A stretch of DNA of 64,000 nt, from NCBI RefSeq assembly GCF_902652985.1, contig NC_047022.1, positions 13,702,001 to 13,766,000 on the forward strand, written 5' to 3'. This document shows, one piece after another, positions 57-7,177 of this stretch (positions within the stretch are counted from its first letter, which is position 1; each line of letters starts with the position of its first letter). Source of the DNA: Pecten maximus (Eukaryota). The notes beneath the pieces were generated by a model. It did no database searches, was not told the origin of the DNA, and saw only the letters and a list, made by a program, of their open reading frames with translations. The translations under genes and the position numbers were made by a program.

Positions 57-2056
57 TACCATTGATGAGAAAGTGACTAGCGCTTGATGCCAATTTTATT
101 TCTATTTCCATTGAAATGAATTAAAATGACGACAGAGATCACGTGGTCCAAGTATCATTATTGCCAATGACACATATAACGTTTAACGTTTAGACTAAAG
201 TGTTTCCTGATTCCATTTTGATACTGCTATTACAATAACAACATTTTGCTTACTTTCATTTTTCTCCCATCAATAGCCCATTGGTGCCTTGATCAGGAAC
301 ATTATATACCTTGCTTAATAAGACTTGAAAAATAAACACAAATACCTTACAGTGTTTACTTAATTCTGAGAGTAACTCTGTCAGACACATGCACAGATCA
401 TGGGAAAATCAGACGACAGCGTACTTCGGTTTCATGATAAGCGACCCAAGACCAATCTGACAATCGTTACCTATTCTTGTCTATCACGTACTTAGTAAAA
501 TTACAAAATACCTGTTATCTGATGTGCCTTTATTTATTTTCAAAACGACTTTTAAACATGAAGGAAACTGTTAAAAGGAAAAAATAATTCACGATAGATG
601 AATCTTATTCTGTATAACGTTGTAATAAAGAAGATAAAACAGCCGGTGGATAGCATGTATATTCACAGAATTCATTTAGTATATTTACATCTGTTAGACA
701 TGTAACAAAGCTACTTTACTGTAGATATATTTTGATTGATGGATTAAAGGATTCTAGGAATTTTCAATGGCATAAGTTTCTTAATTTGAATTGTCAACAT
801 GATTAATAAATACATTTTATTGTCCTGTTATAATACTAACACTTTCGTTAACAGTAACACGCAGGGTATTAACTATGGAGGATAACAAGAAGAAGAAGAA
901 TAAACAGTAAAACCAACACTGAAAACAGAAATAAGGACAAATCTAGATTTTACTACACAGAAACTATTTATGTTTTACGTTAAATCAAAAGCTGAACACT
1001 GGCATGCCACTCGAATATAAATTGAGACTAGGCACTCACAACATAGAGAAAAATTACCACTGTTTAATATTAACAAAAAAATAATACTAAATACGACTAT
1101 GAATTACGTCCAGACCGGGCACCTATGGAACAAGAAATTTCCAAAAGGTTACTATAGGAAATGTGAAATGCTTATTGAATGTATCAGCTGTAGTATTGCA
1201 ACACCTAGTGCACTTAGATGGGACCAATAAGGATGTTTGAGATATAAAATCATATTGGAAAGATTTTTATTTGGAAAATAAATGTATGAGAAAAAAAAAA
1301 AAAAAAATCGTGATATATTTTGGATATATTTTCTTCAATAGAGAAGAAAAATAATTTTCCAAGTAAGAGTGCTTAAAAGCTTTTTTCCTCCATGATAAAT
1401 AACGACTTCAACAATGAAGTGTTGGTTGTACAATTCGAATATTTGATACTGGTACACAGAATATTTAAAGATGTAAATACATTCGACCTTTGATACCTTG
1501 CGAGTATGTTTCATTTACCTCATTAAAACCAACTTCTTTCCATTCATCCCAGCATGCTACTGGCTTACTATCATGATCCTGGACCTCTTGACTATTGAGA
1601 AGTCGTTTTAATAATTCAGCACATTTGACCCCTGTGACCGTGGTAGCAGGTGAAAGTGATTATTTTCACCAAACTTGTTAGCCCTTAATCCCAGTATGCT
1701 ACCTGACCAATATCATGGCCCTTGTCCTGTTGGGTATTGAGCAGAAATCGAAAACGTAAATTGTTTACGACGGACGACACACGGCATGGGTCTCTGACCT
1801 AACAATAAGGTCATTTACTGTCGACGCGGGATTACCTCGAAAGGCAAACGTGCATTACTACATCGATATGTGGATGGCCTAGTTACCGGTACATCTAATA
1901 CACATGAGAGCGAGTCATGAAGCAGTTAAATTATTCATGTGGAGTGTCGCCTGTTTTCATTGGTTGACCCATTTGTAAGCACGCCCATTTCCGCCATCAT
2001 CTGAGTGTCAGTTTTCCCGCGCATGTAACTTGACAGATCTACATCTATGATCGTCT

Positions 2057-4374
2057 ATGCGGCTAGAAATGGATGATTTTATAGAAAGTATCGACCCTGG
2101 ACTCCTTACTTACAAAGATGAGCTGTTCATGCGGTCAGTCACAAGTTTGGCAACTCTCAAATACCTGAGACCGAGGGAGATATCTGAAATGAAAATCCCG
2201 GATGTGTTCAAACGACTACTTACCGATAAAGTTATCGGTCTGCAATCACCTGAAACAAGAGCGGCCATGAAAAAAGATACCAGTCCTTTCACTTCGATGG
2301 TCAGGACAAGTGACAATAAGAACAGAAAACGTTTATTCACCCCTGCTAACTTGATTGATGACCTCAACAAATGCGATGATGAGCCGATCCCCAAAAAGGT
2401 CGGAACTGGAGACCACGCAATGTTTATATTGACCCCCCGATATATTTTATACATACATTACTATTGTAATGTGTCCCTGTGAACTAACCCAGAAAAGAGA
2501 AGACTTAAACTTAAAAAGGATGCCACCTGTCCCTCCTAAGCCGATATCCATACCAGGTTAGTTTACACATGATACACATATATGCCGTAATTGTTTATTT
2601 ATCGACGCTAATGTGCAATAATTCTTGACTCCGTAAATCTGTTGTAATCTGATGAAGAGTGAGCATATATCTACTTAGCTAATCTACACCACGGCTACGA
2701 TATCGCAGCTACCAAACATCATTCAATACATGTCCGGCCATATGGGGTCGCAACGATAATATAAACTTGTAAACACGTACAATGTGTCTGGTCCGTCCGT
2801 CCCGTCGTGTCAATGCAACCAGTGTAACGGGCTATTTGTTTGTTCTGATGCCATTGTCATACATTTCTCGCCGTGTAATCCTCTAATATTGTTGGAATAT
2901 CAAGCAACTTCATCTATTCTTATCATAATTTAGATATTATGATTGAACTAACAAAGGTTATAAACGAGAATACTTTGTGAATACTCCGAGTTCGTATTTC
3001 AGGCTCTCAAAGCACAGGGGCTAGTAACGATTTAAATGAGATAAGAATGAATTTCGTATCTTTGTGTGCTATGAAGGCCTAAAGCATCATGTTTTGTTCT
3101 TTTCAGGATGCACGCCCTTAAAAGTTGTCTGCGATAATTGCCACCATCCTGGACACCGGGCAAATGGGAATCGAGGCAACAAAGCCTGTCCATATCTCAA
3201 ATGTGGAGGCTTCCACTACTGTGGCTTGCTAAACAAGCACAAGGAATTCAAAGCAGAATTGACTGAGGTATTTTGAAATTATATAGTGTGAGGTCCCCTT
3301 TTACCACCCCAGCCCTGTACAATACATGTATAATTGAGTAATCTGTACATCTGTGCACAATTCAGTCACAAAATAATATCATACAGACTTGAAAATGAGT
3401 ACAATAAAAATAATGAAAAGCCATTATGGTTCCAATCTCACAATTGATCAACATGGAAGTTGTATTTTATTTTGTTAATAGAAAAAAATGTAATTGTCTA
3501 TAAAAAAAACTTTAGAATTTTGAGTCTACTCCTGATACCATGGAGTATGTTCGGTTATTTTGTTGATAATTGAAAATGCACAATTAGTGTCTTAATTTAC
3601 TGAATATAGAGAAGACACAAACCCTGTTCTTTATTTGTCCCATCATGTGCCCAAGATTTTCACTTTTATTTTATTTCTAATTTTCAGATGGAGAAAGAAA
3701 TTGCTTCCCTTGATAGAACACTGAAAGATCAATCGGCACAGCTGCAGTCGTTAAAAATTTTCATGAAAACCAATGCAACATCTTTTGTAACACAAGTGAA
3801 AGTCCAGTTAAAGGGTCTGTTTCCAAATAAATACTGCAATAGAGATGGCAACCAAAGGCTGCAGAAAGATATCAGGTTGTTAAAGGTAGCAACAGGGGGA
3901 AAAGTACCAGAGAGACTTAACGCAGGCGATGTCGAGAAGTTACTCAATGATGGCCGAAACAAAATCACTCTAAATTGTGGAAATATTGATGACAATGTAG
4001 ATGTTTCCTCCATGACCGACACAAGTAATATTACTCCATGTACCACAGTGACAACCATTCCAATTTGCCCTGCGTCTGCAACCATTACCAGCAGTCCTGC
4101 TCCAGTGTGGTATCCCTGGAATTCTGTTGCTAGTCCTTCAATGTACGCCTGGAACACGCCCTATTCATATTGGCCTGTTAATCCGAGTGTACCTAGGCCT
4201 GCTACCAGTGCTGCTTCATGGAATTCCTCAGCATCCTACATGTATGGATCCCCCACCTGTACTGTATCGAGGCCAGACCAGGAAATCTTCCCTCCCCTTC
4301 CATTACATGAAGTTTGTGATGATCAAATCAGAACCCCCCCCCCCCCCCCACTGCCACCTGATGATGACCATTAG
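2057..4374 (+). CDS. Transposon-borne second gene, 4 exons (2057-2398, 2493-2556, 3107-3267, 3688-4374), ~417 aa: SAM-like domain, CCHC zinc knuckle plus extra Cys/His cluster, coiled coil, Pro/Ser/Trp/Tyr-rich tail
   Basis: GT-AG introns with consistent phases (0,1,0) join the ORF fragments into one 1,254-nt reading frame. The N-terminus MDDFIESIDPGLLTYKDELF...LKYLRPREISEMKIPDVFKRLL matches the SAM hydrophobic pattern by eye. CDNCHHPGH...C is followed by C-x5-C-x5-H. Confidence 0.75.
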
Positions 4375-5624
4375 TTAAACTCTAATTCAAAACACATGAT
4401 GTTTTGTCTTCTGACTTTCAGTGTTTGACAATGACCCGGACTTTTTTGTTTGTTCATCCTCATTTCGAGCTTAAGTTTAAATACCTGTGATACAGGTTCT
4501 TTTAACAATGTTGTATTAAATTGAAATAATTCCAAAATGAATGTTGATGACTGAAAAGGGAACTTTTATGGCAGTAAATGCCTGTGGTACATGTAAATTA
4601 CTTAAAGACTTATCAGCATACTGTATGTGAGTTGGCCAAATGCATGTAGTTACTAAATACTAATAAATGGTATTCAGAATTTCATTCTTTTGTCTGCTTG
4701 CAATCCCACCCCAATATCACTTTACTTCTATAACTTTCAAATCAAAGTCATAAATTTTATTATAGTGTCATTTGTAATATAATCCCACAAAAGACTTTAA
4801 AATTAAAAGTCTATCTTTATTTCATTACATTGTACAAATATGATGCACAATCACCCCGCAAGATTAAATAGGGATGTACTTAAATTCAGATAAAATTGTA
4901 ATCTTCGACAATGTTGGAACCTCTTACTACCGTTACTAATAATTATTTTAAATTGCTCTGATCAACACTCGCACAACAATAAAACATCGGGATATCAACA
5001 GTAAAGGAATACACATTGATCGGTAAAAACACTGATTTGTTGATATTATTAATTTATAAATAATTTGAATTATGATGTTTCTGGTAGGTGGCACTGAGGC
5101 CTAAAAAAATAATGCACGTGTTTCCACTAACATGCTAGAAAACATAGGGCAGGTAGGAAAATCTTTTTAATTTCTAAATAGTTTTTACTAAGGTTATATA
5201 GACGAGGAATCTTGACTTTAATAGTCCTTCCTTGAAAATGTCCAAGAAAACTTGAGGGTAGGCACAAAAATATAGTGTTTGCGGAAACACAGGTATTTTT
5301 TAGGCCTGATTTTGTGCTATAATATTTATTAATTGAAATAAATTGTTCTATTATTGACACAAGTTCATACACCAATCAACGAGCCATTTATATATTGATA
5401 TCAATACATTTATTTTTTTATTTCATTATAGGGACTTTTCCCACTTGAGCATGCCATAATCATTTCAATAAAAAACACCATAATATTGGGACATGGGCAA
5501 GTCTCTTGACACGAACAGTTAATCGGTCAAGGTCAGACGTCACGCTCGATTACACGTGTGTTGGCCGAGGTGACACTCGACTGTGAAGTTGGTACACGTA
5601 TTTGCTATAAACGTGACATGTAAT

Positions 5625-6633
5625 ATGGAGAGAAAACAAGGAGTGAGGACATCGGACGAACTCAGGAGTAAGGTGATAGGTTTATATGCTGGCGGTTCCT
5701 CATTTCCAGAAATAAGGAGGAAAACCGTTCTGGCATTATCAACTTGTCACGGAATAGTCGGTAGTTTTGTGTCTAAGGGCAGTGTGGAGAAATCCTATCA
5801 TACAACCAAACCTCGAACAAAAATAACTGATGAAGTTTTAAAATTCATAGAATACCAGAAAACAAGTAAGCCTTCGATTTACGCAAAGGAAATTCACGTA
5901 AAATTATTACAGGAAAATGTGTGTACGGCAGATAACGTGCCCAGCGTACGTACGATACAGGATGCTCTGAAAAACGAGTTGGGAATGAGTTACAAGTTAC
6001 TCGGCATCATTCCGGCTGAAACAACAACTGCCCAGTTTCAAACAAAACTTGACAACTTCCTGTCAACTGTTTTGATTTACAAAGCGCATCAATTGCATTT
6101 CTTTGATGAGGCGTCCGTTATTCGTACAGCAGGTCATCGTCGTCGAGGACATGCCTTTGTCGGAGAACCTGCAGTTGAAGTTCAAAAATATGCAAGTAAC
6201 GCTACATACACCGTCATTTTATGCTGTGGTTTCTTTGGTGTTGATTATTTTAATGTCATTGACGGACCATCCAACGCTAATATAATGATTAATTTTTTTG
6301 GCGAAGCATTGGAGCAAACAAATTCGGTAGGAAATCCAGTGTTTCTCCCCGGAGATTGTGTCATTATGGACAACTGTGGTTTTCACCACCAACGGTTTGG
6401 GGAGGCGGTCCTCCGAAACATGCTGGCTAAGCACGGAGTTGAACTGATATTTTTGCCACCATATTCACCGGAACTCAACCCCGCAGAATTTATATTTAAA
6501 ATGATGAGGGACGGAATGAAAAAAAACCTCAAGACTTTCGTACGAATACACGGAATTTTCAGTGGTTAATTCCTTGACTAACATTCCCGACATGGTACTT
6601 TCAAAGTTGTTCTCAAATTGTGGTTATGTGTAA
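5625..6633 (+). CDS. IS630/Tc1-like DDE transposase (probable 1-bp frameshift in the A8 run at 6519-6526)
   Basis: N-terminal HTH-like region; catalytic motifs HFFDEAS, MDNCGFH, LPPYSPELNPAE (38 residues between second D and E). Removing one A gives a typical C-terminus (...SLTNIPDMVLSKLFSNCGYV*, stop 6631-6633). First ATG at 5625. Confidence 0.92.
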
Positions 6634-7177
6634 ATTTTGGTAAAGTAAAGCATTGTAAACTTCCAAATTAGCAAGTTATTGTATGTTTGTAAAATCGGGA
6701 GCAAGGTCATGTCAAAGTCAACTACAATTTGTAACATTGTTTGTGGAGGCGGGGCTTATGAAGCAAGACTTGTCCAATCGCCTCGCGCGTACTATTCTCC
6801 CATTCACCCATTCAATAACCGGCTGTCGTGATCAAAGGAACTTCCTTCGTCTGTCTGGGTAGTATTGCACGTTTGCCTTTCGAGGTAATCCCGCGTCGAC
6901 AGTAAGGACGGTTTCAACTATTGATTAGGACCCAGACGGACAGTTTTATATTGCCATTTTGCTCAAATATCACATCGGTACACGGTAGCACCATACTTAC
7001 ACTGTGATGATTTTAAGCAAGCAGATAACATCAAATACATTGTATAGGCCTTGGTTTGTTTCCTCCAGGGGAAATAATCCATAAACACAACCGCCCAGAC
7101 AATGGCGAACATTTAGAAAAAGACCAAACGTGAGTCGGTGTCAAGGGAGTTTTAAGAAAGACGTCGACCTAAGCTTT

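Follow-up and report, generated by a model that had tools for sequence, protein, structure and literature searches.

Among transposons with a single gene, the Tc1/mariner elements are the textbook example, and tools such as Sleeping Beauty are built on them. A locus of the scallop Pecten maximus raises the question of what a second gene may be doing inside an element of this type. The locus lies in a stretch of 64,000 nucleotides, referred to as the window (NC_047022.1, positions 13,702,001 to 13,766,000 of the forward strand; G000:C8:13702001-13766000 in the coordinates used below), and occupies window positions 1818-6902. A previous reading of the letters alone (the sequence-only reading) suggested that terminal inverted repeats (TIRs) enclose a transposase gene, here called T, and a spliced partner gene, here called P, and that the two may form a dedicated two-gene system.

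To answer this question, the 918-Mb Pecten maximus assembly, protein databases and metagenome contigs were searched for relatives of both genes. We report herein that the element at 1818-6902 is a Tc1/IS630-type DNA transposon carrying T and P, and that it probably represents a defective copy of a two-gene family, in which a transposase is accompanied by a P protein of about 450 residues. P is tentatively regarded as a trans-acting transposition cofactor, an assignment on which our judgement stops just short of even.

Results

Ends of the element and its transposase

The features that define the element are as follows (a slash marks the junction).

1816-1817, no strand: left TA target-site duplication, preceded by T; all ends read tTA/CTGTCG
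1818-1861, + strand: left 44-nt TIR, its identical terminus seen at further loci
5625-6569, + strand: transposase T, with a paired-box-like bipartite helix-turn-helix (HTH) and a DDE_3 domain, D..D-38-E; frame lost past residue ~302
6520-6633, + strand: C-terminal 37 codons of T (..YEYTEFSVVNSL..SNCGYV, stop), in another frame
6859-6902, - strand: right 44-nt TIR, found by inverted-repeat search
6903-6904, no strand: right TA target-site duplication, from the sequence and from comparison of ends across loci

The 44-bp TIRs and the TA duplication were found where they had been claimed. The inverted repeat pair at 1815-1861 and 6859-6905 (47 nt, 98% complementary) is made up of a 44-nt TIR plus TA on each side, and when the ends of all copies were compared, they read tTA/CTGTCGACG. 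The same terminus with its TA recurs in different flanks on C14, C12 and C13/C19, and the element has therefore transposed. A search for subterminal repeats past the TIR found none. A second full copy of the window lineage, about 98% identical to the window, is present at C14:30699814-30705161.

The open reading frame (ORF) at 5625-6569 matches the Pfam families DDE_3 (2.1e-19) and PAX (1.2e-10, which passes the Pfam PAX threshold). The D, D and E columns of T are conserved in 18 relatives, and the combination by which IS630/Tc1/mariner transposases are recognized, a DDE_3 domain with an N-terminal bipartite HTH, is present. So are the TA duplication and the TIRs, both in the window and at other loci, with termini of the TA/CAGTG type in the relatives. 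As counted here, 38 residues separate the second D from the E, both in the window T and in 61 of 63 relatives. Comparison with the C14 copy places a frameshift in the window T at a run of eight A residues (6519-6526) followed by CC.

P and T travel together

Protein searches of the whole genome, exon by exon, recovered relatives of both genes. Diverged T relatives are 45-61% identical to the window T; those of P are 43-66% identical in the first exon and 29-47% in the last exon (28-38% over full-length matches). P and T lie within a few kb of each other at 17 scallop loci, in tandem with P before T at seven and convergently at ten. Six of the seven diverged copies have TIRs of their own (30-128 nt) that enclose both genes, with spans of 4.6-8.2 kb.

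The linkage extends beyond the scallop, where the counts come from metagenome contigs. These contigs were scanned with the T alignment alone, and hidden Markov models of P were then applied. P was found at 43 of the 80 T loci so obtained (T 33-49% identical). Where at least 1 kb was available on both flanks, P stood beside T in 18 of 19 loci, and with at least 2 kb in nine of nine. The two genes are convergent at 26 of the 43 loci, with T before P at 13 and P before T at four. Several of these metagenome elements are compact, with both genes in 2.8-3.9 kb bounded by TIRs and TA/CAGTG ends, and occur on multiple contigs in different flanks.

A profile search of 1.84 billion proteins gave 192 P relatives, and many of their clusters are multi-copy. 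The named sources are the scallops Pecten maximus and Ylistrum balloti, Pinctada imbricata (three loci) and the hemichordates Glandiceps talaboti and Ptychodera flava. A protein search with one family member, P0001, retrieved three homologous proteins only, and a protein search with the window's last exon retrieved none, under a length limit that would hide a 453-residue model.

Trees of the N-terminal half of P, of its last exon and of T have supported clades in common, namely (window,(C18a,C4b)) and (C341,C8b). The order and orientation of the genes (P then T, T then P, or convergent) do not track these gene trees; T or P must therefore have been inverted more than once. Between lineages, the proportion of nonsynonymous differences in P (pN) is 0.3-0.45 against a saturated synonymous proportion (pS) of 0.7-0.95, and within the C18a/C4b lineage the ratio of nonsynonymous to synonymous rates (dN/dS) is 0.63-0.83. 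By these estimates, purifying selection maintains P on the element lineage and inserted copies decay neutrally, the usual transposon pattern; the dN/dS check that the sequence-only reading had proposed thus came out as purifying selection between lineages. The co-occurrence of P and T in TIR-bounded elements, in the scallop and in metagenomes, bears out the idea of a dedicated two-gene system and is not a chance neighbourhood. On the comparative evidence, P and T are inherited as one mobile unit across deeply diverged scallop lineages and other organisms.

Gene structure of P

P was searched exon by exon, with natural one-ORF paralogues and database proteins representing the joined form, and seven diverged P+T loci were assembled from overlapping pieces for comparison of structures. 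The parts of P in the window are the following.

2057-2556, + strand: first coding exon of P (SAM domain, linker, first coiled-coil helix), damaged; it corresponds to exon 1, "intron 1" and exon 2 of the sequence-only reading
2419-2480, + strand: lesion in P, where some 62 nt of AT-rich filler have replaced 85 coding nt, with a stop codon at 2480-2482; located by alignment with the C14 copy
2557-3106, + strand: lineage-specific intron ("intron 2"), 550 nt here and about 800 nt in C14; phase 1; CAG/GTTAGT ... TTTTCAG/G
3107-3267, + strand: Cys/His exon, C-x2-C-H-x3-H-x10-C-x4-C-x5-C-x5-H
3268-3687, + strand: conserved phase-0 intron ("intron 3"), with a homologous site in paralogues, NCBI models and intron-less P genes
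3688-4374, + strand: last exon of P, for the second helix of the hairpin, the conserved helical domain and the disordered, Pro-rich tail (EIFPPLP motif), ending in the stop codon

The sequence-only reading described P as a four-exon gene with three introns. All four of its coding blocks (2057-2398, 2493-2556, 3107-3267 and 3688-4374) are present and their lengths sum to 417 codons. Its placement of P upstream of T on the same strand holds, as do introns 2 and 3, and its intron 1 does not. In the 98% identical C14 sibling, the region of this "intron" (2399-2492) is coding and lies inside a single 175-codon ORF (L002:237-761), the middle of which encodes a coiled-coil stretch that is present in every paralogue. 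Relative to C14, the first exon of the window P has suffered a net loss of 23 nt, which shifts the frame. Judged by this alignment, "intron 1" is a lesion and no intron, and the window P is broken. That the window P is instead intact, as 417 residues from four exons with a genuine intron at 2399-2492, seems very improbable to us. The GT at 2399 and the AG at 2492 do restore the frame, and the product would retain the SAM domain and the zinc module; however, one third of GT/AG pairs restore the frame by chance, the GT proposed as donor belongs to a Val codon in the C14 sibling and has a weak context (GTCGGA), and the window stretch is unrelated AT-rich filler at a place where the sibling has coding sequence, colinear with the coiled-coil helix in every paralogue. 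The intact P of the window lineage, as reconstructed from the sibling, has three exons and about 453 codons.

Intron 2 was upheld by the NCBI model P0014 (LOC117341585), which splices at the claimed junction (2556/3107). This model, on a contig taken as C14, is 100% identical over 130 residues to exon 1 of the C14 copy, joined to the zinc exon. The splice signals are strong, and the unspliced reading ends at GT TAG. The intron is restricted to the window lineage: the flanking codons are contiguous in C4b and C18a, and it is absent from all seven diverged paralogues. Its sequence is unique to the lineage except for 45 nt (2855-2899) that occur at dozens of places in the genome with 87-93% identity. 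A search of the intron for TIRs or direct repeats found none, and it is no obvious mobile "introner". These data suggest a lineage-specific intron gain, in agreement with the gene model.

Intron 3 (3267/3688) proved to be a phase-0 intron that is conserved over all eight scallop lineages examined. In the seven diverged paralogues, exons 1 to 3 of the sequence-only reading correspond to a single ORF, 224-287 codons long from its first Met, which reaches a GT at the homologous position; a ..cag acceptor lies 540-2000 nt downstream and leads into the last exon. C8b has a GT at this site, yet no in-frame splice could be defined. The NCBI models P0001 (XP_033734636.1) and P0002 (XP_033763889.1) are spliced exactly there, the database ORFs P0005 and P0006 from other samples run through the donor, and intron-less P genes of other organisms (L070) are colinear across the junction. 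At G000:C3:19521176-19537350, a twin of the locus at C7:3.46 Mb, about 11.6 kb separate the zinc exon from the last exon, a large insertion in the conserved intron.

Architecture of the P protein

The structure of P0001 was modelled with AlphaFold2 from an alignment of 41 family members (mean predicted local distance difference test score, pLDDT, 73.5; above 90 in the folded parts). The model comprises a five-helix N-terminal domain (residues 1-77), a disordered linker, two helices (130-160 and 218-270) that pair as an antiparallel hairpin, a Cys/His module (175-217) set between the hairpin helices at the tip, another two helices (277-326) and a disordered tail. Both the coiled coil and the Pro-rich tail that had been described for P are thus present.

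The SAM-like N-terminus was upheld by profile, Pfam and Foldseek searches alike. The P family profile matches solved SAM domains with E-values of 3.2e-6 to 1.3e-4, among them ANKS1A (3.2e-6), ANKS1B, Caskin-1 and EphB1. Ten of the 41 members match Pfam SAM_2 and six match SAM_1 (best 1.4e-5); the first exon of the window P taken alone is sub-threshold (E 0.14). In Foldseek searches, the best local matches of the P models are SAM domains, with template modelling (TM) scores by target of 0.55-0.69. Foldseek and VIA structure searches gave nothing significant beyond these SAM-like matches; the hairpin is the sole part matched in the VIA search, and its list consists of generic helical hairpins. 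The ESM Atlas gave no usable feature match for P, and the parts outside the SAM domain (hairpin, Cys/His module, helical domain) have no Pfam or PDB match.

The zinc part was confirmed in its Cys/His pattern. Rather than a plain CCHC knuckle, it appears to be an eight-ligand module without a Pfam match; none of the 41 members matches zf-CCHC. All 41 members share C181, C184, H185, H189, C200, C205, C211 and H217 without exception. The window sequence reads C-x2-C-x4-H, with 10 residues to the next Cys, and distant members show the canonical x4 of the retroviral pattern C-x2-C-x4-H-x4-C. With eight ligands kept throughout the family, a larger module with two metals is indicated, probably two zinc ions.

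Two short motifs were seen outside the folded parts. The linker after the SAM domain contains PK[RK]LF or PKELF in scallop and distant members (RKRLF at window 2327-2341; residues 90-94 of P0001), which we take to resemble a nuclear localization signal or a cyclin-docking RxL motif. In the tail, an (E/D)IFPPLP motif is conserved among the scallop lineages.

A Pax-like DNA-binding domain in T

The likeness of T to Pax proteins extends over the whole paired domain. Residues 1 to about 125 of T (window 5625-6000; L017:1505-2530:-) align without gaps to the entire paired domain of Pax6, Pax5, Pax8 and Prd. A T profile matches Pax paired domains with E-values of 1e-25 to 1e-20 and the PAI subdomain of Sleeping Beauty with 1e-7. 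Among mobile relatives of the Pax paired domain, the T clade may be an unusually close one.

Copies, derivatives and decay

Short copies on C4 and C12 have window 1815-2185 fused to 5443-6905 and lack almost all of P. They share one deletion junction (2185/5443), inside the first exon of P, and lie at separate loci; hence they descend from the two-gene form, and the P-less derivative has itself transposed. The C4 copy has a 185-bp insertion close to the end of T. A T-only relative, L148 (G000:C2:55116000-55123900, 2858-4840), measures 1983 bp, has 32-nt TIRs and carries no P. This element, at C2:55.12 Mb, holds an intact 366-codon ORF that is 46% identical to the window T, and sits in TTAGGG-like repeats about 19 kb from the contig end.

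Individual copies decay. With a filler-DNA lesion in P and a frameshift in T, the window element is a recent insertion that is by now defective, both of its genes being broken. In the C14 copy, P is open and T has a 2-nt deletion near codon 10; this T also shows NPEK at a place where NP.E stands in all others. Both genes are open in lineages C7 (3.46 Mb) and C16 (0.18 Mb). T is open in C18 and C341; the last exon of P is truncated in the former and contains a stop in the latter. C1794 and C2892 (L003 and L004) hold two 98.7% identical copies of one rearranged fragment (window 3125-5471). These two fragments, and L008 at C17:18.51 Mb, end at about window 5471 and adjoin a tandem repeat or satellite of about 155 bp.

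One further feature lies in the spacer between P and T.

5094-5311, no strand: high-copy repeat resembling a miniature inverted-repeat transposable element (MITE), inserted and outside the element proper; at least 30 dispersed copies, 75-83% identity

This repeat is about 215 bp long, with inverted ends GGCCTAAAAAA... and ...TTTTTTAGGCC.

Discussion

The short copies on C4 and C12 and the 1983-bp relative on C2 support dispensability of P in cis, and because P-less derivatives of the window lineage have transposed, P is not required in cis. As a cofactor acting in trans, P would self-associate via its SAM domain and hairpin, its zinc module would bind nucleic acid (the transposon ends or the element RNA), and it would thereby aid T in assembling or in reaching its substrate. 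Several points weigh against this proposal, or against the two-gene reading as a whole. No retrieved copy of the window's own lineage has both genes intact. Binding of P to T, DNA or RNA is putative, and its expression and splicing are supported by NCBI gene models and by comparison. When T of the C7 copy and residues 1-335 of P were modelled as a complex, the score was 0.26 against a mark of 0.34, which is evidence neither way. Finally, the DNA-binding domain of T is complete in itself, and there are P-less elements whose T is intact, so that P is possibly dispensable for the chemistry.

Other roles were weighed as well. P might be a host-directed or regulatory element protein: an anti-silencing factor, as VANC is in VANDAL, a host tether acting through PK[RK]LF or FPPLP, or a damper of transposition. 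Such a role would suit a T that has full paired-type DNA-binding and DDE domains of its own, the movement of P-less derivatives, the long disordered regions of P with their conserved short motifs, and a P that evolves two to three times faster than T by branch lengths. However, no domain of P is linked to silencing pathways, the combination of SAM domain, zinc module and coiled coil suits a nucleic-acid or oligomer scaffold at least equally well, and the P-less copies are few and may be mobilized by P in trans; we consider a regulatory role unlikely. Of similarly low probability, in our estimate, is the stronger version in which P would be an obligatory second subunit of transposition, polymerizing through its SAM domain and binding ends or RNA through a previously undescribed two-zinc module, with T as the closest mobile relative of Pax. 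At the other extreme, P could be a host gene or gene fragment captured once (transduplication), or a separate nested element, with no role in the transposon. T-only short copies do occur, and P paralogues figure at NCBI as ordinary genes for an "uncharacterized protein". On the contrary, TIRs enclose P along with T in six of seven diverged copies, as they do in unrelated organisms, the trees of the two genes are in agreement, purifying selection acts on P between lineages, and the short copies share a deletion junction inside the first exon of P, all of which makes either origin extremely improbable. A trans-acting cofactor remains the role that we tentatively prefer for P.

The window family probably corresponds to the L31 group with its ORF2. 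Puzakov and Puzakova, in Molecular Biology, reportedly described full-length L31 elements of which a second ORF, without known function, is integral; such elements are said to occur above all in Pteriomorphia and also in cnidarians. The likeness consists in a Tc1/mariner-type DDE family in bivalves, and the presence of P inside the TIRs agrees with the reported ORF2 feature. To our knowledge, the partner architecture, its occurrence in hemichordates, its conserved and gained introns and the Pax-like strength of the DNA-binding domain of T have not been described, and our search of the literature library brought up no paper that deals with the ORF2 of L31 or describes a SAM/zinc partner in a Tc1-like element. 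DD37E(L31), named after Mariner-31_CGi of Crassostrea gigas, is bivalve-enriched (Pinctada, Crassostrea, Modiolus, Mytilus; PMC7325037, supplement table). It is treated as a separate IS630/Tc1/mariner family (PMC7325037; bioRxiv 10.1101/656579) and placed as the sister group of Tec (PMC7325037). In L31 the second D is separated from the E by 37 residues, against the 38 counted here (window and 61 of 63 relatives), a one-residue difference for which the counting convention may be responsible. The P of the present family is also found in hemichordates.

Other systems share single features with this one. PIF/Harbinger elements likewise hold two genes in variable relative orientation within one pair of TIRs, and have a partner that acts in trans and non-autonomous derivatives without the partner. 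They differ in a PIF-type DDE domain and a 3-bp target-site duplication, as opposed to DDE_3 and TA here, which sets the window family outside that group. Their partner is a Myb/SANT protein, whereas P has no Myb/SANT match and carries a SAM domain and a Cys/His module; moreover, the present transposase already has a full DNA-binding domain. The ciliate TBE/Tec elements also combine Tc1/mariner-related transposases with extra ORFs; in TBE these are a small ORF and one for a zinc-finger protein, and purifying selection acts on the TBE ORFs. They differ in that their ORFs number three, their spacing is DD34E, their hosts are ciliates and they take part in genome rearrangement. The first 70 residues of P agree by profile (E 3e-6 to 1e-4) and by fold with the SAM domains of scaffold proteins (ANKS1A/B, Caskin-1, Eph receptors), and this is the only domain in common. 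T matches the Pax paired domain in full, and differs from Pax in joining it to a DDE nuclease within a mobile element.

What sets this family apart from one-gene elements is a second protein, fast-evolving yet selected, that has been kept through gene inversions and an intron gain and is spread over at least bivalves and hemichordates. The persistence of P implies a requirement that one-gene elements do not have. P can now be given a defined architecture, consisting of a SAM domain, a helical hairpin, an invariant Cys/His module and short motifs, and since apparently intact lineages have been identified in one genome, the function of an ORF2-type protein is open to direct tests. The idea that Pax descends from a Tc1-like transposase is established, and the likeness of the T DNA-binding domain to Pax may bear on the origin of the Pax genes. 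If P were indeed an obligatory subunit, this would be the first animal lineage of the Tc1/mariner type with genuinely two-component transposition.

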